Part shown: positions 10,974-44,417 of the stretch, in pieces | Position numbering within the stretch: position 1 is the stretch's first letter | How the letters are laid out: each line of letters begins with the position of its first letter | Assembly (NCBI GenBank): GCA_965649825.1 | Contig: OZ287705.1 | Coordinates: forward strand, 569,978 to 633,977 | Direction of reading: 5' to 3' | DNA: 64,000 bases | Source of the DNA: Penicillus capitatus | Taxonomy: Eukaryota; Plantae; Chlorophyta | Notes under the pieces: generated by a model | Told to the model about the DNA's origin: nothing | Database searches by the model: none | The model's input: only the letters and a program-made list of their open reading frames with translations | Translations under genes and position numbers: made by a program

Positions 10974-12956
10974 ATGAAGCTGGTTATCTTGAGCGTGTGG
11001 CTTTGCCTTCTGCTCCTTGCTCCGCTCCAGTCGAGTGGCAGCCGCGGTACCGTCGTCTACGCATTTGCGTCGACGGTGATGTTTTGCTGAGTCGCAGACT
11101 TCTATGACGACGACACGTCCGCCAACTCCGTCCCGTTGCAATTCTCGGTAAGGCTCCTGTTGTTTTGACCTCTCACTGAACGGCGGCTCCAATGGCCCTA
11201 TCTGCAGAACATAGAAGACATACATGATGGAGGTAACAAGACATGCGTGTGCTGTTCCGCGAGATACCGACTGACTCGCACCGTAGGAATCTACTACGCC
11301 GGAGCCTCGGACCGAAAGCTTGCTCAAGTAAGTGAACTACAGTTATTGTGGCGGAAGTTAGCGTGGTGTGTTCGTGCAGACGGGTGAAGATTCTACAGCC
11401 CTTAAGGTAGAATAACGTGTCAGCAACACAGCACTTCAAATGGTTGTTGCTGTACAAGCACGACGTCGGCGAAGGAACAGACGACTGGGTTGTCGGTGAT
11501 GACGGATGGACTCCACTTCACGAAGCAGCTAAAAACGGAGAAGCAGAACGCGTAAAGGTGTGCTTCTCCGTATTCAAATTCCCGTGTGGAGCAGTCTCAA
11601 TCGTAGAGTCTGGTCGATCAAGGCAAAGATGTCGATGTGAAGGAAAACGTTAACGGTAGCACTCCACTACATCAGGCCGCACAATACGGACAGGTTGATG
11701 TCGCAAAGGTCCGTCGAGATAGTTCCTTGTGTGTCTTGGAAGGAGTGGCCGTTGACGCAGGTCCTCATCGACAGTAGTGCAAACATCGAGGCAACGGATA
11801 ATTATAAGCAGACTCCGCTTCATGTGGCAGCACGCTACGGACGGGTTGAAGTCGCAAAGGTCCGTCGAGATAGGTCCTTGTTGTCTCGTGAAGAGTGGAC
11901 GTTGACGTAGGTTTTCATCGACAGAAATGCAGACGTTAAGGCGACTGATCAGTTTGGCCGAACTCCGCTTCATCTGGCAGCACGAAACGGACACGTTGAT
12001 GTCGCCAATGTCCGTCGACGCATTTCTTTGTTGTCTTGTGAAAAGTAAGCGTTGACGTAGGTCCTCATCGACAGAAATGCAGACGTTGAGGCGACTGATG
12101 ACTTCGGCCGAAGTCCGCTTCATCTGGCAGCACGAAACGGACACGTTGATGTCGCCAATGTTCGTCGACGCATTTCTTTGTTTTTTTTTTGTGAGGAGTG
12201 GCTGACGACGCAGGTCCTCCTCGACAGAAATGCAAACGTTGATGCGTCCAGTAAGGCGAAAGAGACTCCGCTTTATGTGGCAGCACAGTGCGGACAGGTC
12301 GATTTCGTAAAGGTCCGTCGACACAGTCGCTTGTTGTCTTGCGAGTAACAGCATCGATGCAGGTTCTCCTTGACAGAGGTGCAGACATCGAGGCAACTGA
12401 TGGCATCAGCCGGACTCCGCTTCATATGGCAGCAACTACCGGAAAGGTTAATGTTGTAAAGGTCTGTCGACGCAGTCAGTCGCTTATTGTCCTAAGAAGA
12501 GCGGCCGTGGATACAGGTTCTCCTTGACAGAAAAGCAGACATCAATGCGAAGGACAGTATCGAACAGACTCCGCTTCATCAGGCAGCACGAAACGGACAG
12601 GTCGATGTCGTTAAGGTCCGTCAACGCAGTCTTTTCTCTTTTGTAACGAATGATTGGCCGTCGACGCAGGTCCTCATCGACAGAAAAGCGGACATCGATG
12701 CGAAGGACAACATGGAACAGACTCCGCTTCATTTGGCGGCAGCGAGCGGAGAGGATATAGTCGCAAAGGTACGTCGCAGTTTTTCTCAGATCCTAGGTGT
12801 AGTTGTCTTATGGCACAGGTACTGATTGATGGTGGTGCGTCCAAGACGATTAAGGACAAAGAAGGTCATACTCCGTATGACCTCATATGTACGAATAAGT
12901 ATGCTACTTGTTCTGCGAGTGCCCGATCTAAGCTAGAGTTCTTGTTGTCTTTGTGA
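10974..12956 (+). CDS. Secreted-type ankyrin-repeat protein A1 (signal peptide, micro-exon linker, N-cap, 8 internal repeat exons, two-Cys C-cap)
   Basis: Signal peptide MKLVILSVWLCLLLLAPLQSSGSR, then exons of 50/25/41/27 nt. Repeat exons of ~99 nt (e.g. 11761-11859) start at 11761, 11911, 12061, 12214, 12363, 12517 and 12670 with TPLHxAAxxG motifs. Last exon ...HTPYDLICTNKYATCSASARSKLEFLLSL-TGA. No lesions seen. Confidence 0.9.
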
Positions 12957-12959
12957 AGA

Positions 12960-15860: not shown

Positions 15861-17230
15861 CTGTGCGTTTCTTGAGCAAAGCAGTCGAATTCTGCCAGGT
15901 CGAGTGGATGCTGTCTTGCATTCTCCTCGAGGGGTTCTCGGTTTCGGGGAATTGGCAATGCGAAGCCTGCCGTCGTCTACGGATCGCTTCGCCGGAACTC
16001 TCCTGCCATCCCCGTAGCCAAACATCCAAAGTGCACAAACACACAACTGCCGTATTCGACGCTTGCTACGGCATCCTCTACGGCGCGACGAAGGAATGTC
16101 TCTGACAAGATAGCCAAAACAGATAGATGTGCGAAGACTCCGGTTGCAGACGTATCTCTGGACAGTGACGGAAGAGAAGCAGGCGTCCATCCGTGCACGT
16201 CACGGACGCCGTTATGAAAAGACTGAAGGAGGAATTGGAAATCGCCCAACCTCTTGTCTTCTCACAGACAAGAATGGCTGTCAAAACAAACGATCATGAA
16301 TCACTCACCTTCCATGAAGTTTGCCGTTGTGCGTCGGGTCTGTTTGAACGATCAATGAGATCACTGTTAGGAACGATGTCTCCGGTTCAGTGAGCATTCA
16401 TTAGTTGGGACCATCACCCTGTAAAGGGCAACCCGAATCCACCGAACTCGCCAATGTTGCTGTGGTAGTGTCAGACAGTCGCGTTAGGTGATGGAGGACA
16501 TCCTCCTCTAAGACAGGGACCGTTCTGTCGTTACCGATGGTGGCATACGACTTGGTTCGATGCTGGATCTCACGTGGGAGGCGGACCACATTCTCGGCAC
16601 TTGATCAGAGATGACGCCTGTCCACAAAGCAGTAGAGCGACAGTTTCGGCGTTGTAGTCCATGACAATGCGCCTGTCTCCTCGCGAGAGCACACGTTTGC
16701 TGTTATGTAATGGAGCGTTCAGCACGGAGCAAGGTTGGCCGTGTGAAACAGCAGCCTGCATGCTGCCATGATCTTGTTCCAATCCAAGAGACCGTCTGTC
16801 AGAACGCCTTCTCAGTCCCTCAGCACTTAATGTTGTGCTTCAACATTCACAGTGAATTCGCAGTTGCGCTGCGCTGTCAGCGACCCTTTGGAGAGACCCT
16901 TCGTACATCCGCGTCATCGAAGCGTCTGCGTGGCACAAAACAACCTACGACGGGTAGAAGAACGACTGGACGGGACTCGCGCATCCTGCATGACGAAGCG
17001 TGCCCGTCACGGCACAACTACGCTCTGACGGATGGAGTCTCTCCATGCTCTTTGCCGAGCGTTTGTCGCTCGTAGCACCTCGAAACGGGAACAGCCCACC
17101 ACGGAAGGCAGCTGCATGGAAAATGACTGCGCGGAACCGTCGAAGGAATAAAGTCCGCCCACCACAGCAATTCTTCATTCGAGAGCTGCGCGTTTGAAAA
17201 ACACAGGAATTGTCTGCGCTGACGAAGAAA
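15850..17230. repeat. Segmental duplicate upstream of A2 (paralogous to 40550-42028)
   Basis: Colinear nucleotide similarity with 40550-42028 throughout. The minus strand carries degenerate coding-like text (LLLCGQASSLIKCRECGPPP, resembling the ankyrin C-cap exon) with stops. Confidence 0.75.
17141..17183 (+). promoter_or_regulatory. Putative core promoter of ankyrin gene A2
   Basis: AATAAA at 17147 and Inr-like A at 17177, 30 bp apart. Confidence 0.55.
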
Positions 17231-17232
17231 GC

Positions 17233-18949
17233 ATGAAGCTGGTTGCCTTCAGCTTGTGGCTCTGCCTTCTGCTCCTTGGTCCGCGCCCGTCAACAAGCAG
17301 CCGCGGTACCGTCGTCCATGCATCTGTGTCGACGGTGATGCCTTGCTGCGCCGCAGACTTCCCTCACGACGACGCGTCCGTCGACTCCTTCCCGTTAAGA
17401 TTCTCGGTAAGGCTCCTGTTGCTCTGCGATTTTACTAAATGGCGGCTCCGATGGGCCGCCTACAGAACATTGACGGAACGCGCCACGGAGGTAACGAGAC
17501 ACGTGTTTGCTGTTGCGCGCATGCTCGGTCGTCGTGCTTCGTAGGAATCGACAACTCCGAAGCCTCGGACCAGAAGTTCAAACAAGTAAACAAACGACGT
17601 ACACTAACCCGCAGCGGAAACTGGCGTCATGGTTTTGTGCAGAGCGGCGAAGTTACTCGGAAGCCTTACCAGGTAGAGTGCTGCGTCAACAACGCGACGC
17701 GACGAAACGCTGTTACTGTGTAAGAGCGCACATGATCAAGGAAAAGCCAATTGGACTGTCGTTATTAACGGATGGCTTTCAGTGGACGACGGAGGGACTC
17801 CCCTTCATGAGGCAGCTAGGAGTGGGGATGTACAACACGTGAAGGTGTGGATAACTCTACTCGAATTCTTAAGTTGGACATCTCCGAACGCAGGATCTTC
17901 TTGTCCAAGGCGCGGATATCAAGGCCAAGGACAAAGGTGGACGGACTCCGCTTCACGCAGCTGCAGAGTTTGGAGATGTCGAAATCATAAAGGTCAACCC
18001 TTGCAACTTTTCCCTTCTCGCCGGAATAACGACTGTCGGCGTAGATCCTCCTTAAGGAAGGCGCAGACATTGAGGCGAAGGATAATGCGGGATGGACTCC
18101 GCTTTATATTGCAGCACTGTACGAAAGCGTCGAATCTCTAAAGGTCTGCGGTCTGCTAACGCAGTCCCTTGCCGTCCCGTGACGAACAGTCATCGGTGCA
18201 GATTCTCCTTCAAGAAGGCGCAGACGTTGAGGCGAAGGATAAGGAAGAAAGGACTCCGCTTCATTGGGTAGCACTGTACGGAAACATCGAACCAGCAAAA
18301 GTTCTTAGATGCAGCATTCGCTTTCTCACGAGAGTAATGACCGTCGGCGTAGCTTCTCATTCAAGGAGGCGCCGATACGGAGGCGAAGGATATATTCGGA
18401 TGGACCCCGCTTCATATTGCAGCGCTGTTCGAAATGGTCGAATCTCTAAAGGTCTGCTAACGCAGTCCTTTACCGTCCCGTGACGAACAGTCACCGGAGT
18501 AGATTCTCCTTCAAGAAGGTGCAGATATTGAGGCGAAGGATGTTGCTGGAATGACGCCGCTTCATGTGGCAGTAGAGGTCGGCAAAACGGGCATCGCAAA
18601 GGTCCGTCGTTGCAACATTCGCCGTCTCGCGAGAATATCGACCATCTGCGTAGATCCTCCTCAAAGAAGGCGCAGAGGTCGATGCGACGGACAATTGGCG
18701 ACAGACTCCACTTCATCATGCAGCAAGGAAAGGATTTCTTGAAATCGCAACTGTACGCCGCAGATTTTCTCTGATCCTGGATGTCGTTGTCCTATGCCAC
18801 AGGTACTGCTTGGTGGCGGCGCATCTAAGTCGGTTAAGAACATAGACGGTCATACTCCTTACGACATCATATGTTTTACGAGATCTTGTTCTGACAGTAC
18901 TCGCTCCGAACTCGAGTCCTTGTTGTCTCCCTCTACGAAGGGTGCATGA
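17233..18949 (+). CDS. Secreted-type ankyrin-repeat protein A2 (6 internal repeat exons)
   Basis: Signal peptide MKLVAFSLWLCLLLLGPRPSTSSR and the same micro-exon leader as A1. Repeat exons such as DLLVQGADIKAKDKGGRTPLHAAAEFGDVEIIK. C-cap HTPYDIICFTRSCSDSTRSELESLLSPSTKGA-TGA. Frame intact after splicing. Confidence 0.88.
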
Positions 18950-19110
18950 TTTATGGCGCTTCTGTCATGCACATCCTGTCGTTTTTGTCCTTGGTCTGTC
19001 ATCTAGATGCCAGATATGATCTAGTGCTTTATGTCGATGGTGCTTTACCTAAAGCTCCATCTCAACGTGCAACTCTGAAAGAAGGTGTTTAATGATTGAA
19101 GTGCTTTGAG
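18950..19110 (+). repeat. Conserved ankyrin-gene 3' flank, hairpin at 19036-19061
   Basis: GATGGTGCTTTACCTAAAGCTCCATC within a block homologous to the other copies. Confidence 0.7.
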
Positions 19111-20311
19111 CGAACGAAGCATCCTTACGCGAATCTCGCGTTAAGTACGGAAAACTGCTCCTGGCTTGCCAGATTACTCTTGTGATTGTGTGTACGGCAG
19201 CGTTTCCGCTGGCTTTTCTGGACGCGGTGCGTCTGAAGCAGACGTCCCTTGGCGCTCACGTCTGGACTCTTTGCATCCGATTAGTCCTTTGCATCTAGGA
19301 AGACTGCAGATCGATCAACGATGACAGGTGACATTCTCAGACGCCTAATGTTCTTACTGGTCTGCGAGTCGAAGGTGGTGACGTCAGGGTGGCGAACGCG
19401 TTTACGGAGTCGCCGTTTTGTGTGACGGCGGAAAAGGACAGAAGGGACTCGCAGCCGCCTTTGTTTACAACAGCATCGACGCGAAGCGCCTATCTATCAC
19501 CTAGGTCGAACAAAACGCACATTTGCCTGTCGACGATCCGCTGGTTTGTGGTCTTATCGTTGTGCAAGAGAGAGATGCCTTGGATCTCCATGCTGCTGGT
19601 GACACGGGTCGGCTCACCTCATTCCAGATAGTCTGGCTGCTTTTCGCCAAAACGGCGATCTGCGTGACGATAGTGGTGTGCTCTGTCTTCCCGTCATCAC
19701 GCCTGCGGACGCGTACCTTCTGTGTATCAATTTCGCTGTAGCTGCTGGAAGGATTCGTTCAGTGAACGCTGGTTTATCCGATGTCTCTTCTGTACGGTGT
19801 CTCTTGCTGTGAGCGAGGGATCAAGACAATAGAGATGTAATGGAAGCAGTTCTTTGTGGATTTCTATCGTCTCTCGAAGAGCGATGCGTTTGTTCAGCCA
19901 TTTCGGTTTCTCTGTCTGAACAGCAATACACACCGTACGACAATGTTAAACGGGTCACATCGTAGCCGACTGTCGTGCACACGTTGTCCTTGTCACTGAC
20001 AGCGACAGCTGCTGGAACTTCTAAAATGGCCAAACGACGGTCTCTCTGGATCCACAGCTGTCGGACACAGCTTGTGACTACCGCTTTACTAGTAAGTCCA
20101 TAAGAAATCGCACAATGGTAGACATACCTGCGATATCCAATTCGACGAAGTTGCCCTCTCGAAGACACGACCACTTCGAGTGGCGCGATATCGTCGTGGG
20201 GTCGAATAGAAAGTGAGGCGATTAAATCCTGCTCTTTTCCACATTACTCAGGAGTCCAAACATTCGTATCCACTTCGACCCGGATGCGCACAACGCCATT
20301 TCCCGGTGCCA

Positions 20312-21552
20312 TCAGATCTTGGACCGTATTGGATAAAACGGATGGTTGGTCGTGTCAAAGCTCAGCGATGGACCGTTGGTTGTGTCAATGCTCATCGATG
20401 GTCCGTGAATGACGCAGCACGCCGTGACTGTCAGAAGAACGGTGATCAGAACAACGAAACCAATAGAACCGATGATCAGTGCCATGCGCCACCATGGGCG
20501 GTGCTTGCCATCGTCGTTACTGCGATCCTCTTCAGAATTCGACGTGGAGTCGGCCACAGATCTCTCGTTTCCGGAATCCTCCTCGTCCACAAAGAGATAC
20601 ACGAGGTCGTATGGGATGCTCCCCGACCTGTCATTTACATTCTCGGACGCGCCGTGATCGAGCAGAATCTGCCAATGCATCTCGCGTCCCTTGACTGTAA
20701 AGCAGACTGAACGCCTCACCTGAATAACCTCCACGCATCCTGCGGCGGCTGCAAGGTGCAGTGGCGTCATGCCCTTGTCGTTTTTCGCTTCGACGTTGGC
20801 TCCTTTGTCGAGCAGAATCTGCCAATGCATCTCGCGTCCCTTGACTGTAAAACAATCTGAGCGCCTTACCTGAATAACCTCCACGCATCCTGTGGCGGCT
20901 GCAAGGTGCAACGGAGTCATGCCCTGCTCGTCTTTCGCTTCGATGTTCGCTCCTTCGTCGAGCAGAACCTGCAACCGCGGTGACAAGCGACAGCGATCAC
21001 ACATCGGCGTTTGCTTTCACGGTCTGCGCTCTCGCTTCGACAGTCGCCGCGCTTCCTTCTGAGGGAATCGACACTGCGCAGTGGAGTGCTGTGAAACCGT
21101 TCTCTTCTGTCTCGTCGATGTCCGCGCCCCGATCGAGAAGACGCTGCGCAGAAGAGCATCGCCAGCGAACCTTCTCCCGTATGTTACTTAACGCACCTTC
21201 ACGCGGTCTGCTCTTCCCAGTGCGGCTGCCACATGAAGTGGTTTCGTTGCGAAGACCGAAGCCTTACGGTAGTCAGAGTTGTGCTCGAGCTGCAACTGCG
21301 TCGGCAGCCTCTGTCGACGCGCTCGGTCTACGGTTGTTTGTTTCACCTGTTCAGCGTTGTCGTCGTTTCTCTTGGCGGCTGCGATGTGCAAGCGACTGTC
21401 CCCAGCGTTCCCTTCCGCTGACAGCTGGGCACCTTCGCGCAACGACAAGCTCGACTGAGGGACGACATGGTTTAACCGACACGACCATGACTGCCGAGTG
21501 TCGAGCGTGGAAGAAGGAAACAGAGCCAAGCGCAAAGAACAGCGCGTTTCAT
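20312..21552 (-). CDS. Type-I membrane ankyrin-repeat protein A3 (signal peptide, ~4 repeats, acidic stalk, TM helix, short tail)
   Basis: MKRAVLCAWLCFLLPRSTLGSH; repeat exons VLLDEGANIEAKDEQGMTPLHLAAATGCVEVIQ and ILLDKGANVEAKNDKGMTPLHLAAAAGCVEVIQ; TM WWRMALIIGSIGFVVLITVLLTVTACCVI; tail GPSMSIDTTNGPSLSFDTTN. One GC-AG intron (AAA|GCAAAC). Confidence 0.85.
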
Positions 21553-21879
21553 GTTTCCGCGAGTGCAGACGCCAGAGACACCGCAAGGGCCAAACTCCGT
21601 TTCACTGGTTCGATTGCGAAGTTCAAATGAAAACCGAGACTCCGTTGCGAGATTGAAATTGCGGGCTGTCCGAGATGTCGTGCAGATGTACGGACAACAA
21701 CAGGCGATCCTTCGCCACATTCGAGGAGAGTGTTCCCGAGAGGAAACCTCGGGCGTCCGTTTCTCGTACGGCCAGAGCGCTGAAAAGAGAGCAGACAGCG
21801 ACCCGTGCTGCATGAAGCTCCGTCCAGCCGCGAGTACTTCTTTTCGCAGTGGGGCGACCTTTCGCGTTCCGACAGTGAC

Positions 21880-22460
21880 ATGGGCATCATTCACCTACAC
21901 GCGAGAGGTGACCTTGTCTTCGGAGCCAGTGCGCTCAGCTGCTGCTAAAGAGAACTGTCCGTCGTCGTCGAGACGAAACGGTCGTCTCTGCGAGACGGAG
22001 ACCACATCGAATGGTCTATCCAAATGGACCACTCGGCGGCTCAGTTCGAAGCCGTTACCTTTGCCCGAGAGCTCATCGAGGCCGAACGTTTCCAACGCAA
22101 CGTCGACGCTACGGACGCCAACGGCGACACGCCTTTGCATACGACAAGCCGCTTCTGCCAATCGCCCATGAACGCCGTATGTCTATTCCGTACATCAACA
22201 TCTGTAGACTGCCGCGGGGTGCTGTTTTGCAGCTCTTCCTGAATTCTGTTGCCGATACGACGATCGAAAACGACGATAGCTTGACGCCCCTGTGCTTGGG
22301 TGCAAAGACAGACGATCCCAATTGCGGAGGCTTCGTCAATCAGTACATCGATATTGGCGGCGTCGACATCAGCGATCGATGCAATGGTCTTCTGCCCAAA
22401 GAATTGGCCGATCAGTTCGGAAACGAAAACGTCGAGGATGTGCGTCCACTTCCCTCTTGA
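21880..22460 (+). pseudogene. Decayed ankyrin-repeat gene, head-to-head with A3
   Basis: RNVDATDANGDTPLHTTSRF and DTTIENDDSLTPLCLGA; in-frame TAA near the 5' end. The 5' part is homologous to 26500-26720 and 62050-62250 (opposite strand). Confidence 0.6.
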
Positions 22461-22699
22461 CAGGCACATGCCTTGATCACAATGTCTGCCGACCAGATCC
22501 TTTTTCAGAGAGAGTATGGTGGCTGGGATGGCCGCTGCAGTTCGTCGAGTGTTTTTAGTGGATATAGAGGATGAATGGTTGATGTGTGACCATCAAGACG
22601 CAAGGGAATAATAATGACAGGCCGCATTGGTCTGTCACGCGTTGCACGATATCCACTTTTTTCCTTTTTCTGTGTTGGGTGCGAAGGATTCTTGTCCGT

Positions 22700-24580
22700 C
22701 GTGATGTTGTTTTGCAGCAGCGTTGCGATCGGATACTGGCAAGGCATTGCCCGTTTAAACGGTCATCGCAACAGCTCCCTTATGTAACGAACTCCGAACG
22801 AAAAGCTGTCATGCCATCGAAAAAGAAAACGACTGCTTTACCAGAGACCGTCACGCCACTCGCAGACAGAGTTCCCACTGATAGAATTAGACGATTCGCG
22901 AAATGGCCATCGATAATGTTACGATCTCCGGCATTCATCGCTGCTTTTGCTTCTTCCATTTGCACGACGATGATCGTCCTACAGCCACCACTCACACAAT
23001 GACAAAGAGCATAGAACTCTACCCTTGTCTTCTCTGGCGGCGGGTGAATACTGTAAGAAACTGTCTTCTTCATCTTACAATACCGTCTCGGTCAATTCGC
23101 TCCTCGATATACAATCATGTCGTGACCGTGCCTTATCCTGTGCCTCACACACATTGCTTGTCTTGCAGCTGACCACCGCCTCCGAAGACATGAACAGCTT
23201 GCCCACGACGCGCTCATCATCTCCCGAATGATACACATGCAATAGTGTTTTCAATAGAGTCGGTTTAAGTGCCAGATCGCACTTCTGCCGAGGACACCAC
23301 TACCGCAGACTTCTTTCTCTAGTCGAGAAAGGACAGGCCTTTTTCCATGTCTCTTATCGATGTCCAGTCACGCATCAATGAAACAACTGATGCCGTCGCG
23401 AAAGAGATCTGGATGCAGTGTTTCTGAACCTGTTGGTTCCGAGCTTGCGCACAGTTCTCAGGGTGACCCCAGAAGGTTTGTCGTTGTAAGGACTGCCCAG
23501 CCTTCTTCCGTCTGAAGACACCTAAGAGACCAAAACGTTCCCTTTGGATTCTATCCGGAATCCGAGACGACGTTAGATTCGCCTTCCTTCCTCGCATTCA
23601 TCACTGTACGGCTAACGAAACGTCGTCCGACACACGTTGACGCCTTGATGGATGATCCTATCCGTCTTGTGCTCTTCTGGGAACACCTCTTCGTATTATT
23701 CTGCGAAGCCGTGGTTCGGAGAGGACCTTGAAGTTTCAGCCGTCTCCTGTGCGCGATGCCGGCGGTGTGCTTCTTTCATTGCACTGACGAAGTCGTCTTG
23801 GTTGTCCACTGCTTCCGTCGCATCTCAAGAGACCGCCAAGGACAAGACTGGATGACGTAACGCCATCGAGCCGAATCTGATTGGCGTTCTGGCGTGGACG
23901 CGACGAACACGTCGACCAATCTTCTGCGAAATAATGCTCCATTGCACGATGATCACCGAACCCTCAAGCATACACAAAATACGCAAAAAATCGTGTCAGT
24001 CCTGTTCACTACGCATCTCGAGGCAGTCCGAGTTGGCCAGAGATTTGCAGAACGATGTCAAACGCGACAGTTTGTGAAAAGGAACTTCAAAAGGCTGTAT
24101 TCTGACATGATGCAGAAGCGCATTTCTTCTTTCCTGTTCCGCCAGCAACAAATCCACTGTTCAGCTCCAGAACTGAGGACCGTGACACCGTGAAATGCAC
24201 AATTTGAGTCCCCGCCGTTTCAAAAGTCGATCTGTCGAGAGCCAAGTGGGGCGCAGTGATTCCGTCTGCACCTCCGCCAAAGGCATAAGCAACGCTGCAG
24301 CAATGATGCGTCTGGTATGGGCCAATTCTGATCCGGAACGAAACGGGGACGAGCCGGCTACGTTCTATTAAGGTGTCGGAGACCCCCAGTCCTTCTGCCT
24401 CGGAGGCAATCCATTTCGACGCTTCAAGTGACCAGTAGTTACCCGGATTCGGAGATCCGTATCCGAGAAGGCAACAGTCGCATGCTTCCGTCGACGTTCT
24501 TCTCCTCTTCGGGAGTTGCTCAACGTCACGGCAGCCGAAATGCGACAGTCGTGTTGAAGGGCTCTCTCCAAAACAGCACA
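22700..24580 (-). pseudogene. Possible decayed beta-helix (Pmp-like) gene fragments
   Basis: Interrupted frames contain AYAFGGGADGITAPHLALDRSTFETAG, VVGKLFMSSEAVVSCKTSNVCE and LSVGTLSASGVTVSGKAVVFF, reminiscent of GGA/FxxN repeats. Many stops, and the similarity is weak. Confidence 0.3.
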
Positions 24581-25329
24581 TTCATGCCACCTGTCATATG
24601 CCAGACCGCACACGCAAGAGGCAAAGGAAACACAGTGGCGCGGACGGAAGGGCCGCAGATACAGAACGAACGCCTACCTCTCCGCGGCGACATGTCACCG
24701 GCTACCCACGACGGAGCGGAAGGTATTCGTCTGACAAGATTGAGATGACCCTTGAGTCAGTCACCTCTCCTGCAGTCAACAGAGTGCCAGTCATCCCATT
24801 GAGGCCTCGGCTGGAGAGTCCAAGTGTGACCGTAAGTGATTTTCTGATAGCAGTCGAAGGACAGCGCGTTTCTGCATGTATCTTGCACAGCGTGGGACTG
24901 TAGGCACTCTGCCAGAAGTGTGCTTGCCACAGGTGCCTCCACGCGGAGCTCCGAGATGCAGTTCGATCTTCTCTGTCCACCCTCAGCAGAATGAAGCTGC
25001 ATCTTCGACAGTTGTCAGCCCATACGTACAGTCTCAGAAGAGCTCTCGACAGAGAAGGATGATACGACAGCAGTCCTGTCAAGAGATGTTTCCGAGGAGA
25101 ACAGCGCCTAGGAGATTGATTGCCAGGGAAGGGCATTCAATCGAAATGACAAGTCATTCTCGAGAGAAAGGCCGAAAACGACAGGCAGTCAGTACTTGAA
25201 GGCTCTATACTAGTGCTGCCGGGAGAGAGGTGTGCTCAATCGCACGATGACGGAGTTGCCATGATGGCAGCGAGACGGCGTCGTTAGCAGGGATGGCGAA
25301 GCCAAACAGCAAGAGGCTTGATTTGATCA

Positions 25330-26720: not shown

Positions 26721-27008
26721 GCACGTTCGAGCGACAGCAAAGTGTTTAGGCAAGCCAGGACAACGGCTGGTTTCGTTTTCGCTGTACGGCTCCCCAGAAA
26801 CCGGACGCCCGAGGCTTGCTGCCGTCAGGCTCGTTCCGCAAATAGCCTTGAAGGAATGCAGGCGATGTCCTGTAGATTCGCATGACAGCGCGGACAGCCT
26901 ACAAATTCAATTCTTGAATCTGAATCGTCGCGTGTGCTTTGTTCCAAACCTCGCGTTTCAACACGACTGAAAGATTCTTCGCAGTGCCTCTGACGCTCGC
27001 GCAAAAAC

Positions 27009-28832: not shown

Positions 28833-28834
28833 GA

Positions 28835-29180
28835 GAGTGCATGATTCATGGCGTCTCTATCATGCACATCCTGCTGTCTATTCTTGGTCTGTCATCTACA
28901 TGCCAGACATGTTCTAGTGCCCCAATTCGATGGTGCTGTACATAAAGCTCCATCTCAACTTGCAACGCTGAACAGTGCTTAATGATTGAAGTTTGTTGTG
29001 CGACGCATCGTTACGCGCGTTTCGCATCGGATGCGGCTGCTGTAGACAGACGACTCAGTTTTGGTAAAGAACTGTCGTGGCTGGATAATGGTCTTGTTTC
29101 TGCTGGCCTTTGAACGCGGTAAGGCACCCACGAACTAAGAGTCTGTTCACTCGTTGTTACTCTGTATCGCAAGACGACTC
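28835..29180 (+). repeat. Conserved ankyrin-gene 3' flank, hairpin at 28929-28954
   Basis: Homologous to 12960-13310, including the downstream ~200 bp. Confidence 0.72.
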
Positions 29181-31248: not shown

Positions 31249-31871
31249 TGTGAAGAACTCCCTCCGGCACCCTCTTCCTGTACCTCCCTCTCGACGTCCT
31301 CGGCTTGGACGACACGTATTTCTCCCTCGCCTTGGCCGGGAGGTGGAGGTGGAGCATTGTTGCCGGAGTCGTTCCCGTGTTGGCTCATCTCACAAACGCA
31401 GCGGAAGTCTTGAAATTGGATGAGGATGGGCGAAAGTTCGGAGGCCACACAAACAGCTTTGCAGCAAAGAGCGACTTGTTACAACTTTGGGAATAGACAG
31501 CGAATGTTTTGACAGATTGTATGCGATTCAGAACACAAGTGTAAACTTTGATGTTTAATCGAAAGGTGTTTTTCTGTGTCAAAGCCTTGCTTAAATACTC
31601 CGACCCTGATGTGACGACAGGAAAATCAGCTGAATTCTAAGAGTGAGCTCGCAATGAGGTTCCCACTGAAACCAGGTAATTCAGTATGAACTTCTAGAAG
31701 TTTCTTAGGAACTTCTCAAGAACTCACTCCCAGTCATCACGACTTGTTTGCGATTCAGCAGTGACGGTTACGTCACACGACCAAAGACGCGACAAGCGCT
31801 AAGTGACAGAAAGGTCACCATTACAGAGACGTCCCATCACTGTTCTGTCAGAATTGCGCCATTCTTTCACA
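31249..31871 (-). mobile_element. Solo LTR of an LTR retrotransposon (623 bp)
   Basis: TG...CA termini with short inverted ends (TGTGAAGAA / TTCTTTCACA) and a 5-bp target-site duplication GTGTT (31244-31248 and 31872-31876). Removing it restores the ankyrin exon. TATTTAA at 31597-31591, and an ORF start (MSQHGND...) runs off the end. Confidence 0.9.
31688..31723. promoter_or_regulatory. Heat-shock-element-like array within the solo LTR
   Basis: Perfect three-unit HSE TTCtaGAAgtTTC at 31692-31704 plus adjacent GAA/TTC units, ~95 bp upstream of the LTR TATA-like box. Confidence 0.6.
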
Positions 31872-33218
31872 GTGTTCAAGGAAAATCTACTCAAAGGCCA
31901 TTTGCCACAAAACAGAGAATAATGTGTCGGTGGACTACGATTTCAGTGCGCCCCCAACTTGCTGCATAATGAAGTGGGGCCTTGTGATATCCGTCAAGAG
32001 GGTTGACGTTTGCGTCGTGTTCAAGGAGCATCTATTCGACAACCATTCATCACAACACAGACAAGACAGAGAAGGTTGGGTCGACGGACCTTTACGATTT
32101 CAGTGGCTTCATACCGTACTGCATAATGAAGTGGAGCAGAGTTGGATAAGTCAGGAGCGTTGATGTTTGGTTTGTGTTCGAGGAGGATCTACTCAACGAC
32201 CATTCATCACAACACAGACAAGACAGAGAAGGTTGTCGCAGCGGACCTCTGCGCATTTTGTGCATCCGTACTCTGCTGCATACAGAATTGGAGTAGAGCG
32301 GGAATTGTCCAACGCATCGACGTTTGCTTCGTTTTCAAGGAGGATCTGCTCAACGACCATTCGTCAAAAACAGAGAATATTGCGTCGACGGACCTCTACG
32401 ATTTCACTGTGTCCGTGTATTATTGCAACGTGAAGTGCAGTGCGACCGTATCTCTCTTCCTTGTAGTCGGGCTTCGAGCCGGTATTGATCAAGTTCTACG
32501 TTTGAAACTGTTCGAAGTGGGAATTAGAGCAGACGCGCTCACCGTTACGTATGTTATGTTTCCATTCTTAGTTTCCTCGTGAAGTTGGGTCCATCCGTCA
32601 ACACCGATAACCCGTTTACCGTTATCCTTAGCTTCTGTCACTGCCGAAAACTCTCCGGCCTAAGGCAGTAACAACAATATACAGCGCTATGTTATTGCCG
32701 CGTCATTCTACCATGATGTCTTCCTTAGGTGGTAAGCCGTCCTACACAAAAACACCACGCTATTTTTCCGCCCTGGTAACTGCAGTGCGTTTACTTGCGC
32801 AAGCTTTCGGTTGGAGGTCTCGGCGTTGTCGATTCCTACAAAGCGAAACAGACGCTCTCGCACGGAACAACAAACGCGTGTCTCTTTACCTCCATCGCGC
32901 GTGTTGTCTATGTTCTGTTCGCGGAGCACAGAACCGCCATTCAATGAAAGGTCAAAGCAATGAGCGTTACCGAGAGTTTAAACGGGACGGAGTTGGCGGA
33001 TGCGTCGTCAGGAGAGAAGTCTGCATAGCAGCAAGACATCACCGTCGACCCAGATGCACGGACGACGCTACCGCGGTTGCCCGTCGACGGGCGCGGAGCA
33101 AGGAACAGAAGGCAGAGCCACACGCTGAGAATGGACAGCTTCATGCTTTCTTCGTCAGCGCAGAGTTCGGCTTAGCTCAGATGGACAGACAGTTCGTGTG
33201 TTTCTCCAACAGAGAATT

Positions 33219-33261
33219 CGCGAATGAAGAATCGCCGTGGCGGGCGGACTTTATTCCTCCG
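33219..33261 (-). promoter_or_regulatory. Putative core promoter of ankyrin gene A6
   Basis: Minus-strand AATAAA starting at 33255 and Inr-like A at 33225, 30 bp apart. Confidence 0.55.
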
Positions 33262-34873
33262 ACGGTTTCGTGCTGCCATTCGCCACGCGGCTGCCGTCTG
33301 CATTCGGTTATCTCTCTTCCGAGTCGGTACGCGTGCCAAGTGCTCTGAAACGAGGATGGAGAGACTCCATTCGTCCGGGCGCAGTTGTGCTGTAACGGTT
33401 AGTCTGCGTCTTGCAGGACGTGTGAGTCGCGTCCAGCCGTTCCTCTATCCGTCTTTAGCCGCTTTGCGCGAGCGCCGCGGATGGTTTGTTACCGTCGATG
33501 TAAGAACGGTCTCTATCTACCAAACGGTTGCTGACAGCGCAGCACAGCTCCCCAACAGTCAATCACTGCAGTTAGAGGTGCTAGTCGTTGCATGCAGGAA
33601 TGGGTGCCTCCACAGACACTAGAAATAGACTCATGTCCTAGAGAGTCTGTGGTGAATGGCCGACCACACGATGAGCTCATCATTCGAGAAAACACTCATC
33701 CATTCTAAGCTGCTGAATGGCAGGCACACACCCTCCGACACCAACACCGTGGTCATTGTGCTCTTCCAAGTAAGATGATGTATTGGTTTGCACAGCGATT
33801 TCACGATTCCTCGGCTGACATTTGTTTGCTGCGTTTATCGAAGGTCCTGTGCATGGCGGTAGGAATGAGATCTCTGGTGTCTCATCGTTAGCGCCACACA
33901 GAGAAGAGTGCACCACCCACTGTTTACGAAGGAGAATGGGCACTGGGTGGCGGACATTGTTCAAAGAAATGGGAGGATGTGGACGTGTGAGGGTACACAG
34001 TGAAGGAGGTTCTTCATCTGGAAATCGCATCAGACGAATGACGCGACATTGCTGCCTTCCTAGTCGATAACAGCGAGACTCCGACACTGCAGATCGAAGA
34101 GGCGGCGACAGACGCGGACGTGGATGTAGGGATGCAATCCCACAACCACATCGACAGGTCACACACAGATAGCCGCCGCCGTCTCGAAGATGTATTCCAG
34201 AAAGGATGAAGAGAAGGAATCACAGTTTGCAGGATGGAGCAGTGGTAAAGAAAACGGAGATTTCTGAACTCCCTGGACGGCAGGTACAGTGATCACAGAT
34301 CTGCAGACTCGGATGGACGACTGTCGTCTTTGCAGCAGCGTTCTAACGTCATTGGCGGGACTGAAGTGGACAGGCAGACGGAATCGGAGATTGCGTTGCT
34401 CCACACCTGATGTGTCACCAAGAGCTCAGAAAAAGAGAAAGAGAGTACACAGATGCACTGAGGGAGAAAAGGCAAAAAGAGTGATGCGTGGCACAAAGAG
34501 TGTGAGGATATTGGATCATGCGAAAAGACAAGTCGTCAGACAGAATGGAGAAACTCAGCTAGTAACGAGGTCTCTTTGTTACACAACACTGTCGATAATG
34601 TCACACATCTTCTGTCTGCCTATCTGCACGAGTATACGATGCACTCTTTCCTGGTCTGACTGCTTCTCTGCATTCCAGTCGAATCATTTGCACATGGTTG
34701 ACAGGTTTGCATCTTTGATGAAGCATCTCCCTCGTGCGATCTCTGCTTTGTTCGCCAGTGAACAGCGAATCACTTCATCGATGACCTCATCCACAGGCAT
34801 GCATGTGCAGTACAGTACAGATTCATCTCCCCAACACAGATTTGTGCTTAGACTGCATGTGAACTCAGATCGG

Positions 34874-35902
34874 CAGTCCAATCAGCCGACATGTCATCTC
34901 ATCTGTCGCCATCGCGCCTCCTCAGTCCAGTCAGCCGGCGGGTCATCTCATCTGTCGCCATCAATCCTCGAGAGTCCAGTCAGCCGGCGGGTCATCTCAT
35001 CTGTCGCCATCGCGCCTCCTCAGTCCAGTCAGCCGGCGGGTCATCTCATCTGTCGCCATCAATCCTCGAGAGTCCAGTCAGCCGGCGGGTCATCTCATCT
35101 GTCGCCATTGCGCCTCGAGAGTCCAGTCAGCCGACCTGTCATCTCATCTGTCGCCATCAATCCTCGAGAGTCCAGTCAGCCGGCGGGTCATCTCATCTGT
35201 CGCCATTGCGCCTCGAGAGTCCAGTCAGCCGACCTGTCATCTCATCTGTCGCCATCGCGCCTCCTCAGTCCAGTCAGCCGGCGGGTCATCTCATCTGTCG
35301 CCATCAATCCTCGAGAGTCCAGTCAGCCGGCGGGTCATCTCATCTGTCGCCATCGCGCCTCCTCAGTCCAGTCAGCCGACCTGTCATCTCATCTGTCGCC
35401 ATCAATCCTCGAGAGTCCAGTCAGCCGGCGGGTCATCTCGCCAGTTACCATCGCGCCTCCTCAGTCCAGTCAGCCGGCGGGTCATCTCGCCAGTTACCAT
35501 CGCGCCTCCTCAGTCCAGTCAGCCGGCGGGTCATCTCGCCAGTTACCATCGCGCCTCCTCAGTCCAGTCAGCCGGCGGGTCATCTCATCTGTCGCCATTG
35601 CGCCTCGAGAGTCCAGTCAGCCGACCTGTCATCTCATCTGTCGCCATCAATCCTCGAGAGTCCAGTCAGCCGGCGGGTCATCTCATCTGTCGCCATTGCG
35701 CCTCGAGAGTCCAGTCAGCCGACCTGTCATCTCATCTGTCGCCATCAATCCTCGAGAGTCCAGTCAGCCGGCGGGTCATCTCATCTGTCGCCATCGCGCC
35801 TCGAGAGTCCAGTCAGCCGGCGGGTCATCTCGCCAGTTACCATCGCGCCTCCTCAGTCCAGTCCGCCGGCGGGGTTCACATCGCCAGTCGCTTTCGCGCC
35901 TT
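34874..35902. repeat. 49-bp minisatellite, 21 tandem units with a few interchangeable sub-blocks
   Basis: Consensus (C/G)AGTCCAGTCAG-CCGGCGGG-TCATCTCATCTGTCGCC-ATCGCGCCTCCT, with unit starts every 49 bp (34874, 34923, 34972, 35021...). The last unit is degenerate. Confidence 0.95.
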
Positions 35903-36679: not shown

Positions 36680-37724
36680 ATGAACAAGCGTGCCGTTCTC
36701 CGCGCGTGGCTTCTGTTCCTTCTTGTCCTTCGCTCGGCATCCGCCAGTCACGGTGAAGCCGAAAAGCCATCCCACGACTGGACCAAGCTTCTCGACGTAG
36801 AAGGGCCAAAGCTGTCCGCGGAAGAGCAGAACGGCGAGTCGGATGAGGGTTTCCCCCGACAGCTGCGAACGCAGCTCCCCTTCGAGGGAGGTGCGAAGCA
36901 CCCTGTGCTCAAGAACGGCCTAAGGACAAAGCTTCACGAGGCGGCTCGGGATGGAAGCCTGAAGGACGTGAAAGCAAGTACCGACGCGTGAGCGCGCGGC
37001 GTTGGGAAAGTGATTCCTGCGATGAAGGCCCTGCTCGACGAGGGAGCCAACATCGAAGCGACGGACGACTCGGGAAGGACGCCTCTCTTTGATGCAGCAG
37101 CGTCTGGAGACGCGGAGGTGGTGCAGGTCCGTCTCCAAGTGCGAAATGGTTTTCCGAGTGTAACCACGTCTTGCAGGTTCTGCTCGATGCCGGCGCCAAT
37201 ATCGAAGCGGCGGACGGCGATCGGATGACGCCGCTCCACGTCGCGATCGTGTCTGGGAATGCGGAGGCGGTGAAGGTGAGCGTCGATGTGTGAGAGGACA
37301 TGCCAGATGCACATGTCTTGGAGATGCTGCTCGACGTTGGGGCAGACTTTGGAGCGACAGATGCGGCAGGACTGACGCCGCTTCATTACGCAGCGGCAAC
37401 TGGACGCGTGGAGATTGTTCAGGTGAGACGTTCGATCGGCTGTCCGGTGCTGAGCGGTGAAGGCTACCATCACAGGCTCTGCTCGAGGCGGGTGCATCCA
37501 AGGATGCGGAGGACGTCTATGGGAGGACGCCGTACGACGATGTGTGTACCTACAGCGAGGCGGATTGCTCTGGAGACATCCAGTTGGATCTCCTGTCCCT
37601 GCTGGCTGCCGATGACGACGGCGGCCTCAGTGGTTTCTGGATAACGGTGATCATTGTCTGTTGCGCGATCTTCCTCGTCTTCTTGGCAATCCTTCCGCTG
37701 CTGGCACACGGCGTCAAGGAATGA
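36680..37724 (+). CDS. Membrane-anchored ankyrin-repeat protein A7
   Basis: MNKRAVLRAWLLFLLVLRSASASH, N-cap RTKLHEAARDG and three internal repeat exons. C-cap PYDDVCTYSEADCSG, then hydrophobic FWITVIIVCCAIFLVFLAILPLL-AHGVKE-TGA. GC-AG intron (AAA|GCAAGT). Confidence 0.87.
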
Positions 37725-40549: not shown

Positions 40550-42028
40550 ACAAAGACGGCGGGTCGCGTTTGGCGTTTTTGCGCGTTTCTTCAGGAACGC
40601 GGTCGAATTCTTCGAGGTCGAATGGATGCCGTCTTATTTCTTCCGTAGGGGGTTCTCCGTTTTCTGGACTTGGCAGTGCAAAGCCTTCCGTCGTCTTTGG
40701 ATCACTTCGTCGCAGCTTTCCTGCCATTCTCGCATCTAAACGCCCAAAATGCACAAACATACTACAGCCGTATTCGACGATTGCTACGGCATCGTCTACG
40801 GCGCCACGACGGAATAGCTTCTGCGAGATTGCCAGAACGACTAGATATGCGTAGACTCCGGTTGCAGACGCAGCTATCTGGAGGGAGACGGAAGAGGAGT
40901 GCGCGTCCGTCCGTGCACGTTATGGTCTCTGTCGCGAGAAGACTAAAAGATAAACTGGAATTCTCACCTTCTGTCCATAGACTGGAGAGAGAGGTATGCA
41001 GAGCATCAAGACTTTCTCGCAGTTCACAAAGTCTGCTATTTGTGCTTCGAGTGTGCTTGAACGATGGATGGGATCATGTTCAGGAACGATGTGTCTGGTG
41101 CAACCAACATTCACCAGTTGGGACGATTACCTTCAAAGGGTAGCAGAAACCACTGAAAGCGCGAGTGTTGCTGCGCCAGTGGCAGACCATCGCGTTAGAT
41201 GATAAAGAATGTCTTCATCTCGGTGAGGGACCGCTCTGGCGTTACCAAAGATGGCATACTGCTCGCTTCGATGCTGGATCTCGTGTGGGAGACGGACCGC
41301 ATTCTCGGCACTGGATCACGAGTGACGTTGGCGCACAACTCAGTAAAGGGACAGTTTCGACGTTGTAGATCATAAGCAATGCGTCTATCTCCTCGCGGGA
41401 ACAGGATGTCTTGGTTATCGGAAGCACATGTTTGCTGCACTGTGATGATCCGTTCAGCACAGAGTAATGCTGATCACCTGAAGCAGATTCCTCCAGGACA
41501 TATAAAGCTGTCTACTGCATACTGCCATGATCCCGTTTCAATCCAAAAGGCCGTCAGTCTGAACGCCTTCTCAGTCCCTCAGCACTCCAGACTTCGTAAT
41601 GTTGTACTTCAACATTCACAGTGAATTCGCAGTTTTGCTGTGCTGTCAGCGACCTTCGGCAGAGACCATTCGTATATCCGCGTCATCGAAACGTCAGCGT
41701 GGCACAAAACGGCCGACGACGGATAGAAGAACAAAGAGACGCCACTCGAGCGTCCTGCAAAACAAAGTCTTGCCGTCACAGGACCAACACTCTCTGACGC
41801 ATAGAGTCTCTCCACCCTCCTTGCAGAGCGCCTGTCGCTCGCAGCACCTCGAAACAGAAACAGCCTGCCACGGAAGGCAGCTTCATGGAAAACGTCGGCG
41901 CGGAACCGTCGAAGGAATAAAGTCCGTCCGCCGCGGCGATTCTTCATTCGCCAATCGCACGTTTAGAAAACAGACAAACTGTCTATCGACCTTTACGAAG
42001 AAGAACTCTCTGCGCTGTCGAAGAAAGC
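40550..42028. repeat. Segmental duplicate upstream of A8 (paralogous to 15850-17230)
   Basis: Colinear similarity to the region upstream of A2. The proximal ~400 bp also match the upstream regions of A1 and A6. Confidence 0.75.
41910..41952 (+). promoter_or_regulatory. Putative core promoter of ankyrin gene A8
   Basis: AATAAA at 41916 and Inr-like A at 41946, 30 bp apart. Confidence 0.55.
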
Positions 42029-43865
42029 ATGAAGCTGGTCACCTTCGGCGTGTGGCTCTGCCTTCTGCTCCTTGTTCCGCGCCAGTCGGCAGGCAGCCGC
42101 GGTACATCCATCCATGCATTTGCGTCGACGGCGATGTCTTGCTGCTCTGCAGACTTCTCTCCCGACGACGCGTCCGCCAACTCCGTCCCGTCGAAACTCT
42201 CGGTAAGGCTCCTGTTGCATCGACATTGCAATTAACGTCGGTTCCGATGGCCCCTCTGCAGAACGCAGACGACACGCGTCATGGAGGTAACGCGACACGC
42301 ACGCATGTTCCTTGCGCGAGCGACTGTCTCTTTGTAGAAATCTACTACGCCGAAGCGTCAGACCGAGACTTCAAACAAGTAAATGACCTACAGTTAACGG
42401 CGCAGAACACCATCGCGGTGTCTTTGTGTAGGGCGATGACGCGACGCAGAAAACTTACCAGGTAGAATGACGTCAAACGACGCAACGCTATTAATCGTTG
42501 TCACTCTCTAAGGGAGAGCCCAACCGTGGGACAGCCAATTGGCATGTCGGCGTTAACAAACAAACTCGGCTTCATTCGGCAGCCAGGGATGGAAAAGCAA
42601 AACTCGTAAAGGTGTGAACGCGTCGAACGTAATTCACGCGCTTGACACTGCCGAACGTAGGACCTGCTTGACAAAGGCGCAGATATCGAAGCCAAGGACG
42701 AGCACGGCCGGACTGCTCTTCACTTGGCAGCAGTGTCCGGAGAGGTTGAAGTCGTAAAGGTCGGTCTGTCGATGATCTTCTGCCATCTCGCGAGGAGTGC
42801 CCTGTCGTTGCGCAGATCCTCCTCGACCGAGGCGCAAACATCAAGGCGCAGTGGAGCGACGGTTCCACTCCGCTTCATTTCGCTGCACGGGATGGAATGG
42901 TTGAAGCGATCAAGGTTCGTCGACGCCGTTCCTGCTGTCTTGTAAGAAATGGACGTCGGTATAGCTTCTCCTTGACCGAGGCGCCGACATCGAGGCGACG
43001 GATAACGACGGAATGACTCCACTGCAGTACGCAGTTCGGAGCGGAAACGTCGAAGCGATCAAGGTTCCTCGACGCCGTTCCTTGCTGTCTTATAAGGAAC
43101 GGACTTTGATGTAGCTTCTCCTTGACAGAGGCGCAGACATCGAGGCGTCGGATGATAGAGGAGTGGCTCCACTGCATACCGCAGTGTCGTGCGGAGACGT
43201 ATACATTGAAGTCGTGAAAGTTCGTCAACGCAATCCTTTCCTGCTTCGTGAGGAAATGGCCTTCGACGCAGTTTCTTCTCGACAGAGGCGCGGATGTCAA
43301 CGCGAGAGATAACGAAAGAGGAACTTCACTGCATACAGCCGTCGTCTTCGGATTCATTGAAGTTATGAAGGTCTGTCGACGCAGCTAACTCTTTGCTGTT
43401 TCGCGAGGAAAGGCCGTCGGCGCAGGTCCTCCTCGACAGAGGTGCAAACACCGAGGCGAAGATGCGTGACGGCGGCTCTACTCCGCTTTTCCTCGCAGTA
43501 CAGTTAGGAACATGTAAATCTATAAAGGTCTGTCGACTGAACCCTCTACGGATGCGTGAGGAATGGCCGCCGACGCAGGTCCTCCTCGACAGAGGCGCAA
43601 ACGTCAATGCGGCGAACAGAGCCGGTTGGACTTCACTTCACGCAGTAGCATGCCTTGGCTCGGTCAAAAGAGCAAAGGTATGTCGCAGACTTGCACAGAT
43701 CCTGGTTGTAGCTGTCCTATGACACAGATACTGCTTGATGGTGGTGCGTCCAAGACGGTTAAGAACAAAGACGGTCATACTCCGTATGATCTCATATGTA
43801 CGGATAAGTATGCTACTTGTTCTGCGAGTGCCCGATCTAAGCTCGAGTTCTTGTTGTCTTTATGA
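42029..43865 (+). CDS. Secreted-type ankyrin-repeat protein A8 (7 internal repeat exons)
   Basis: Signal peptide MKLVTFGVWLCLLLLVPRQSAGSR and a micro-exon leader. Exons such as DLLDKGADIEAKDEHGRTALHLAAVSGEVEVVK. C-cap HTPYDLICTDKYATCSASARSKLEFLLSL-TGA. Confidence 0.9.
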
Positions 43866-44100: not shown

Positions 44101-44417
44101 AAGCTCGTCTCGTCCTGTTCGTGAGCGGTAGGAGTGACGCGACGCTAAGGGAATGTTGCCGCCAAATTTGCAGACAGTCAGTTCTACACCGAACGCGGCT
44201 CTACTAAAGCGAGGTTAACTTTTTTGCGCATACATCGCGCTGCAGACAGTTGTGAAACGTGTAAAGGGAACGGCATTTTACACTCGATCGTCCTGTGAAA
44301 GAATAGGATGACGAGATAATGAAAGGGCTACGAATGCATTCGCCGAACAGTCGAGCGTCCCTAAAAGCGCTAACGCGGAAAAATATGATCTGACAGGCCT
44401 GCACGAATGGAGGCGAT

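Follow-up and report, generated by a model that had tools for sequence, protein, structure and literature searches.

We describe a tandem family of ankyrin-repeat (ANK) genes in a 64,000-nucleotide stretch of DNA from Penicillus capitatus (contig OZ287705.1, positions 569,978 to 633,977 of the forward strand), referred to below as the window. Seven genes, A1, A2, A3, A5, A6, A7, and A8, lie between positions 10974 and 43865, where our rebuilt models give uninterrupted coding sequences with GT-AG introns only. From these sequences we propose, with a probability of roughly 55%, that the genes encode extracellular or lumenal ANK binding proteins, forming a secretory-routed tandem family of a chlorophyte that was partly re-duplicated recently and that may act in surface recognition or adhesion. 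What would be new is the combination, in a green alga, of a tandem ANK family predicted to enter the secretory pathway (with some members anchored), strict one-repeat-per-exon cassettes separated by introns of ~51 nt, and recent cassette turnover.

Gene models and predicted protein architecture

ANK-coding exons were searched for with a motif scan and with a family hidden Markov model (HMM) trained on candidate open reading frames (ORFs) bounded by AG and GT. Gene models were built by hand and by script from 5' alignments of the paralogues, direct reading of the sequence, and the frames that follow the last repeat; the gene calls on record for the contig are prokaryote-style and unspliced. Between 11 and 44 kb, the ANK-coding exons fall into seven groups, with introns of ~50 nt between the exons. 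With the family HMM, 43 segments of the window score as ANK-like, including two weak, isolated remnants. Pfam, run on A1, A3, A6, and A7, detects ANK repeats (PF00023 / PF12796) above the gathering threshold, with E values from 5e-87 to 4.5e-28 and 3–9 repeats matched. Rfam and tRNA scans gave no matches.

The model and translation of A1 (10974-12956, + strand) comprise 15 exons and 415 aa. A signal-peptide exon (10974-11046, phase-1 donor) is followed by four acidic-linker mini-exons, nine ANK exons (eight of 99 nt and one of 102 nt; Pfam ANK E = 5e-87), and a C-cap exon with two cysteines. A1-like plans are found in A2 (17233-18949, + strand; 13 exons, 359 aa), where seven ANK exons (a 120-nt N-cap and six of 99 nt) precede the C-cap, and in A8 (42029-43865, + strand; 14 exons, 385 aa), with eight ANK exons of 99–105 nt ahead of the C-cap. 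The model of A5 (27009-28832, + strand; 14 exons, 387 aa) likewise contains a signal-peptide exon, four linker mini-exons, eight ANK exons (six of 99 nt and two of 102 nt), and a C-cap, and its exon 4 donor is located 9 nt further downstream than in the paralogues. The internal introns of A5 (27742-28542) are all exactly 50 nt long (6 of 6), with an AAG acceptor instead of the usual CAG or TAG. A6 (33144-30805, − strand; 13 exons, 361 aa) is modelled with a signal-peptide exon, linker exons, five ANK exons, a 674-nt intron (31262-31935), two further ANK exons, and the C-cap. The long intron contains a dead ANK exon with a stop codon, and A6 is intact only if this intron is spliced.

The two remaining genes depart from this plan. 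A3 (21552-20312, − strand; 7 exons, 309 aa), established by sequence reading, modelling, and Pfam, has a signal-peptide exon (phase 1) and five ANK exons of 86, 99, 123, 99, and 99 nt. Its last exon encodes a C-cap in which the two cysteines are not conserved, an acidic spacer, one predicted transmembrane helix, and a tail of ~30 aa. In A7 (36680-37724, + strand; 5 exons, 276 aa; model and Pfam), the signal peptide (MNKRAVLRAWLLFLLVLRSASA), the linker, and the N-cap are all contained in an uninterrupted first exon of 288 nt. Three ANK exons of 99 nt follow, and the last exon encodes the C-cap and a predicted transmembrane helix with a tail of ~5 aa.

Taken over all seven genes, 35 of the 47 ANK exons measure exactly 99 nt and the remainder 86–123 nt. 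The number of ANK exons per gene varies from 3 to 9, so that the original prediction of a repeat number differing between paralogues and of exons mostly of 99 nt stands, while its range of about three to eight exons has to be extended to nine. The 74 introns are in phase 0 (63) or phase 1 (11), never in phase 2, and all but one are 45–60 nt long (median 51), the exception being the 674-nt intron of A6. Past the first ANK exon, phase 0 is the only phase observed (48 of 48 introns). The earlier description of uniformly phase-0 introns of about 50 bp is therefore accurate for the arrays, but introns 1 and 3 at the 5' end are in phase 1 and the long A6 intron does not conform to it in length.

Exon and intron together form a unit of ~150 nt that is repeated in tandem (Tandem Repeats Finder periods of 149–157). 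The uniform intron phase is explained by the descent of the repeats from one ancestral exon–intron unit, and its many instances are not independent events. The proteasome gene on the same contig has introns of ~52–57 nt; since housekeeping introns are equally short, the tiny introns are a feature of the genome.

Many internal ANK introns (11709-43578, e.g., 12616-12669 and 43371-43425) start with GTCCGTCGACGCAG and end with (G)CCGTCGACGCAG. The motif CGTCGACG is an 8-nt palindrome that also forms a direct repeat at both intron ends, and it is decayed in many copies. We considered pairing of the intron ends through CGTCGACG and discarded it: just 18 of the 47 introns retain at least 6 of the 8 possible pairs, and the motif can equally well be read as a direct repeat. 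We regard the motif as an ancestral remnant. The N-cap intron (GTGTG...) and the C-cap intron (GTACGTCGCAG...CACAG) differ from the internal introns, and their positions are constant across the paralogues. An apparently higher conservation of introns than of exons proved to be an artefact of a gap-friendly aligner, which returns 74% identity even on shuffled sequence. In ungapped comparisons anchored at the splice sites, introns diverge like third codon positions.

Exon 1 is homologous in A1, A2, A5, A6, and A8 (MKLVxLSVWLCLLLLAPRxSxGSR, ending in a phase-1 donor), and the plan of exons 1–5, with GT-AG introns of 51–60 nt, is conserved in the same five genes. In these, exon 1 is followed by the four mini-exons of an acidic linker of ~50 aa (DFxxDDASANS...), a degenerate N-cap repeat, the array, and the C-cap exon. 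The C-cap has the consensus GASK..KD..GHTPYD.IC......C...L..LL, whose two cysteines are retained in every gene except A3. A related N-terminus is found in A3 and A7 (MKRAVLCAWLCFLL and MNKRAVLRAWLLFLLVL, respectively).

A heuristic scan finds the n-, h-, and c-regions of a signal peptide in 7 of 7 N-termini, with 1–3 Lys or Arg residues and 9–14 hydrophobic residues of mean Kyte–Doolittle hydropathy 2.6–3.0. The h-region is followed by Pro (Arg in A7) and by small residues at positions −3/−1, in the form P-R-x-S-x-G-S-R or SASA. The seven predicted genes combining a signal peptide with ANK exons are thus recovered as intact models; the predicted signal peptide is common to all paralogues, although in A7 it does not occupy an exon of its own. 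Transmembrane windows (19 residues, Kyte–Doolittle value >1.8) are found at aa 250-282 of A3 and aa 243-277 of A7, and in none of the other five proteins. With a signal peptide and one C-terminal helix, A3 and A7 are predicted to be type I single-pass proteins. None of the seven proteins carries a KDEL/HDEL-type retention signal. By Pfam, A1, A3, A6, and A7 contain only ANK families, with no ROC-COR GTPase or NB-ARC domain and no match to the PGG domain of plant ANK–transmembrane proteins of the ACD6 type; there is at most one transmembrane helix per protein, with the signal peptide ahead.

We infer export of the seven proteins from these features. Exon 1 would encode a cleavable endoplasmic reticulum (ER) signal peptide, after which the mature protein would consist of the linker, the N-cap, 3–9 canonical ANK repeats, and, in six of the seven genes, the two-cysteine C-cap. 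The five proteins without an anchor would be released, while A3 and A7 would be held in the membrane with the ANK solenoid facing the outside or the lumen. The sequences show that units of ~150 nt are gained, lost, and replaced by unequal or ectopic recombination with the frame kept, and the family would most likely function as a germline set of extracellular or lumenal binders of differing specificities.

An inverted second cluster and turnover of repeat units

A profile of the C-cap exon was searched against 1.8 billion representative proteins. Apart from generic ANK proteins, which make up most of the matches, the search returned A6 of the window itself and P0348, a short sequence that nearly duplicates the C-terminus of A5. 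P0348 sits in a second cluster, the locus L004 (111910-132146), on the same contig and ~28 kb from the first; these coordinates refer to contig ctg340182_20x_l (285,549 nt) of ENA metagenome assembly ERZ25074695, where the window corresponds to positions 83695-19696. L004 contains the genes A2', A3', A5', and A6' and another PMP-like gene, which brings the family to at least 11 members on the contig. The locus is colinear with window positions 17896-34871 and inverted on the contig, defining a segmental duplication of ~17 kb with a background divergence of 2–6% from ~18.9 kb onward. A2 and A2', with arrays that are 25–40% diverged, are probably not part of the recent duplication (boundary near 18.9 kb) and were left out of the comparison of recent duplicates. 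Near 23.8-24.2 kb and 25.3-26.1 kb, the window contains additional stretches of ~0.4 kb and ~0.8 kb relative to L004.

The comparison of A5 with A5' is direct evidence of unit turnover. Exons 1–7 of the two genes are 0–6% diverged and exons 13–14 ~8%, while the middle of the array is without a match and A5' is longer by 153 nt. Exon 7 of A5 is 99% identical to its counterpart, exon 8 has no partner in A5', and exon 9 pairs with A5' unit 2, with 95% identity in the exon and 100% in the following intron. Conversely, the A5' units at L004 positions 9409 and 9558 have no partner in A5 (best matches 79% and 88–91%), and exon 12 of A5 shares no more than 81% identity with the A5' exon in the same position. 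This amounts to at least three events at the level of whole units, all in a very recent time frame. The differences lie between gene ends that are 92–99% identical, and we consider them the strongest evidence that the cassette structure is put to use in evolution.

The duplicates differ in their state of preservation. A3' is fully intact, with all splice sites GT-AG. A5' (L004 10025-10237) has lost its stop codon, and the protein reads ...YPYW followed by 30 more aa, the ORF that corresponds to P0348. In A6', the acceptor of intron 2 is changed from CAG to CAA (the L004 copy of window position 32915) and is lost. Beyond these, the window holds two weak ANK-like remnants, both on the + strand: an isolated one at 22081-22176, with a score of 18 against the family HMM and outside any gene model, and one at 44397-44513, just downstream of A8 and past the end of the cluster as first delimited. 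The original prediction of birth-and-death evolution with changing repeat number agrees with the unit differences between A5 and A5' and with the decaying members A6, A6', and the remnants. Decay is real; as for the decayed copies said to be interspersed in the cluster, they amount only to the dead exon of A6 and the two remnants.

On a longer time scale, whole paralogue loci, including up to ~1.4 kb upstream and ~0.3–0.6 kb downstream, share 65–75% DNA identity. Repeat units are closer within a gene than between genes (69% vs 58% identity), and the closest pairs are neighbours in one array (A1 exons 9/10, 93%; A3 exons 5/6, 89%; A5 exons 11/12, 84%). This adjacency of the closest units indicates that the arrays lengthen through duplication of their own units. 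The last exons of A1 (12819-12956) and A8 (43728-43865) share 93% DNA identity, compared with ~68% for the remainder of the two loci, which suggests gene conversion between the 3' ends of these genes.

Variability, selection, and alternative explanations

Per-position variability, measured as entropy, is highest at positions 14, 15, 17, 22, 25, 26, and 28 of the exon frame. The positions randomised in designed ankyrin repeat proteins (DARPins) correspond to exon-frame positions 12, 14, 15, 17, 25, 26, and 5. Most of the high-entropy positions map onto the beta-turn and helix-1 positions randomised in DARPins. In other ANK proteins these make up the face that contacts the target, and here they change almost without restriction; conservation is seen in the framework, the caps, and the signal exon.

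The ratio of replacement to silent substitution rates (omega) was compared between binding-face positions chosen a priori and the remaining framework. Among older paralogues, omega is ~0.85–1.0 at the face and ~0.43 elsewhere. In the recent pairs without A6, it is 0.73 at the face and 0.23 in the framework (dN 0.064 and 0.020, respectively; dS 0.088), with amino-acid changes in 6 of 42 face codons and 5 of 156 framework codons (p = 0.013). The signal exon of the three recent pairs shows 2 replacement changes and 6 silent-only codons, and is, judged by this count, under purifying selection in the recent duplicates.

The A6/A6' pair behaves differently. It shows an excess of replacement changes (32.5 vs 3.5, omega ~2.8), with clustered multi-nucleotide changes at beta-turn codons and unchanged adjoining introns, and no gene-conversion donor for these changes was found in ~100 kb. 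Binding-face omega reaches 2.4–2.8 only with this pair included. Given the dead exon of A6, the missing splice acceptor of A6', and a face omega of 0.73 once A6 is excluded, positive selection was rejected as a conclusion from this pair. In the intact genes, with face omega of 0.73–0.98, no robust positive selection on the binding face was detected. The substitution pattern thus points to a constrained framework and a binding face changing at a near-neutral rate.

Several observations weigh against extracellular or lumenal binders. The near-neutral change of the binding face also fits simple relaxed constraint, and A6 and A6' are probably decaying. N-glycosylation sequons number only 0–1 per protein, and several of the proteins have an odd number of cysteines. 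The 5' mini-exons (22–50 nt) are placed by paralogue conservation only. Six exact spliced proteins had no match among 15 billion records, and a search with full-length A1, dominated by generic ANK proteins (≤44% identity), found no close homologue. A JGI metagenome scan for the family gave chance matches only, and the collections searched held no transcript, proteomic, or annotation support.

Alternatively, the genes may encode secreted proteins directed at a second organism (for example a host, a partner that is a fungus or an animal, or grazers), serving in interaction or as effectors. Their ANK repeats would then act on proteins of the partner, as has been proposed for ANK effectors of oomycetes and for ANK proteins of bacterial symbionts. 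The combination of signal peptide and ANK array is the same as in a class of secreted ANK proteins of Phytophthora sojae (PMC11139960), and a role at the symbiotic interface has been suggested for an expanded ANK family of a lichen photobiont (PMC6652019). As the contig derives from a metagenome, the alga may live in association with a host. We nevertheless regard effectors as unlikely: a translocation motif is not evident, and the two anchored members, A3 and A7, fit surface receptors better than exported proteins. Moreover, no homology to oomycete ANK effectors turned up in the A1 search, a result obtained with no direct comparison to the oomycete sequences. Residence inside the cell, in the ER, Golgi, vacuole, or vesicles that form wall or scales, where the ANK solenoids would scaffold or chaperone cargo and have no part in recognition, appears quite unlikely to us. 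Signal peptides show ER entry only, the conserved tail at the C-terminus (KLEFLLSL and similar) might direct sorting, and the cluster was co-duplicated with a large gene encoding a signal peptide, PMP/beta-helix repeats, and a multi-pass membrane region. However, the proteins lack a retention signal of the KDEL/HDEL type, and a freely varying binding face with rapid unit turnover is not expected of scaffolds with fixed partners.

ANK proteins are overwhelmingly cytosolic, and the present models come from sequence alone, with thousands of alternative 5' splice paths; the N-terminal exon could therefore be mis-joined, or encode an uncleaved anchor, and the arrays could be ordinary cytosolic proteins that underwent a normal ANK expansion. 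This seems improbable in view of the exon 1–5 plan with typical GT-AG introns shared by five genes, the purifying selection on exon 1, and the single uninterrupted exon in which A7 carries signal peptide, linker, and N-cap. The C-terminal helix with a very short tail in A3 and A7 also fits a type I topology. Finally, it is highly improbable that the cluster consists mostly of decaying duplicates without current function. The dead exon of A6, the lost acceptor of A6', the lost stop codon of A5', the remnants at 22.1 and 44.4 kb, and the omega of ~2.8 for A6/A6' would agree with such decay. Against this, full frames and every splice site are kept in all seven window genes and in A3', over up to 15 exons, and the framework omega is 0.2–0.45. 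We retain secretory-routed ANK binders as the preferred reading. Of the original interpretation, the secretory routing and the birth-and-death evolution with changing repeat number have a good basis in the sequence; an antibody-like or immune function, with recognition of microbes or of self and non-self, is a putative role.

Genomic setting and comparison with known systems

Just outside the window lies a proteasome alpha-7 gene whose best matches among named organisms fall in Chlorophyta, at 73–77% (Haematococcus 76%, Dunaliella 75%, Chlamydomonas 74%); unnamed transcript assemblies reach 84%. A plant-type gene with actin-fragmin-kinase-like (AFK) and dual-specificity phosphatase (DSPc) domains is found nearby. 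Together, these two genes identify the host as a green alga and not a brown alga. The housekeeping neighbours are located at window positions 4131-5663 (− strand) and 6424-6987 (+ strand) and at positions 5972-7346 and 16226-21062 of locus L001. The set consists of a divergent actin-related protein, a Sam50/Omp85 fragment, the plant-type AFK-like and DSPc gene, proteasome alpha-7, and ribosomal uL30. For the divergent actin-related protein, a word-based search returned only three relatives, the window's own entry among them.

Adjoining the ANK cluster, a large gene or gene pair at 45708-50958 (+ strand) has a signal-peptide-like start, Chlamydia-PMP/right-handed beta-helix repeats, a Cys-rich stretch, and a multi-pass membrane region; a second copy begins at L004 position 19262, after the second ANK cluster. 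Between A6 and A7, a minisatellite (34875-35873) contains 20.4 copies of a 49-nt unit with 86% matches. The unit length is not divisible by three, and each of the three frames stays open throughout the minisatellite. Dispersed repeats unrelated to the ANK genes pair 25330-26637 with 60848-62214 (74–75%) and 52172-52588 with 63584-64000 (91%).

The nearest parallel in gene structure is found in candidate receptor families of Ectocarpus. Its LRR-ROCO and NB-ARC-TPR genes, built on leucine-rich repeats (LRR) and tetratricopeptide repeats (TPR), place each repeat on an exon of its own and show shuffled exons as well as pseudogenised repeats (described in 2012, PMC3341825, with a follow-up in 2024, PMC11378527). 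The brown-algal precedent cited in the original prediction is therefore real and accurately described, but the host here is a green alga, and the families are analogues and not relatives. In both systems, the repeat exons are equal in length, multiples of three, and adjoin in phase 0; shuffling or indels alter the repeat number, the genes are clustered, repeats are pseudogenised, and evolution is by birth and death, here for ANK. The Ectocarpus proteins differ in being cytosolic, with ROC-COR or NB-ARC signalling domains, whereas the present ones are predicted to have a signal peptide and ANK repeats only, with or without one transmembrane helix. Further differences are the repeat type (ANK vs LRR or TPR), the lineage (chlorophyte vs stramenopile), and the intron length, ~51 nt here. 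Diversifying selection has been reported for the Ectocarpus families, in contrast to the face omega of 0.73–0.98 in the intact genes of this cluster.

Among secreted proteins, the ANK class proposed as effectors in the oomycete Phytophthora sojae resembles the present family in having a signal peptide followed by an ANK array and in being expanded by duplication (PMC11139960). Those proteins come from pathogens of plants, and the proposal is that they act within host cells. The available part of the report does not describe the one-exon-per-repeat structure present in this cluster, and two members here are predicted to be membrane-anchored. The original view that extracellular ANK proteins are unusual holds in that ANK is mostly cytosolic, but it has to be qualified, as secreted ANK proteins had already been proposed in eukaryotes on the evidence of this class. 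The ANK family suggested to act at the fungal interface is likewise an expanded one, in a lichen alga (PMC6652019). The diatom proteins dAnk1-3 were considered as a precedent for lumenal ANK and set aside, as the paper places dAnk on the cytosolic face and reports no targeting signal.

Like DARPins, the proteins of this cluster have an N-cap, consensus-like 33-aa repeats, a C-cap, and matching variable positions. They differ from DARPins in being natural gene products and putative binders, with two cysteines in the C-cap and a conserved tail that DARPins lack. The vertebrate ankyrin genes ANK1-3, in which most repeats are said to lie on 99-bp exons, differ from the present genes in encoding cytosolic membrane-skeleton adaptors and in having long introns, no signal peptide, and no tandem paralogue cluster. 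The likeness to lamprey variable lymphocyte receptors is one of concept only, that of an extracellular or anchored solenoid binder made from repeat cassettes. The lamprey receptors are assembled somatically from LRR cassettes, whereas the variation seen here is germline only, with no evidence of somatic change.

Few protein-binding modules are as common as the ankyrin repeat, which is almost always cytosolic. If the family is truly exported, nature would use the ANK scaffold outside the cell as engineers use DARPins. ANK would then be the third repeat type, after LRR and TPR, and the green algae the second algal lineage, for one-repeat-per-exon variable binders. The recent duplicate pair provides a natural before-and-after view of cassette turnover. 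A bolder reading, which we consider quite doubtful, is that the green alga maintains a germline library of secreted and membrane-anchored ANK solenoids that would recognise microbes, viruses, mates, or partners and would draw its diversity from recombination of 150-nt exon–intron cassettes, perhaps with exon skipping in addition. Were this true, the family would be an ANK counterpart of the LRR-based recognition systems and a natural analogue of DARPin libraries. Export by itself would already make the cluster a tractable starting point for studying the little-known ways in which green algae recognise microbes, partners, or mates.

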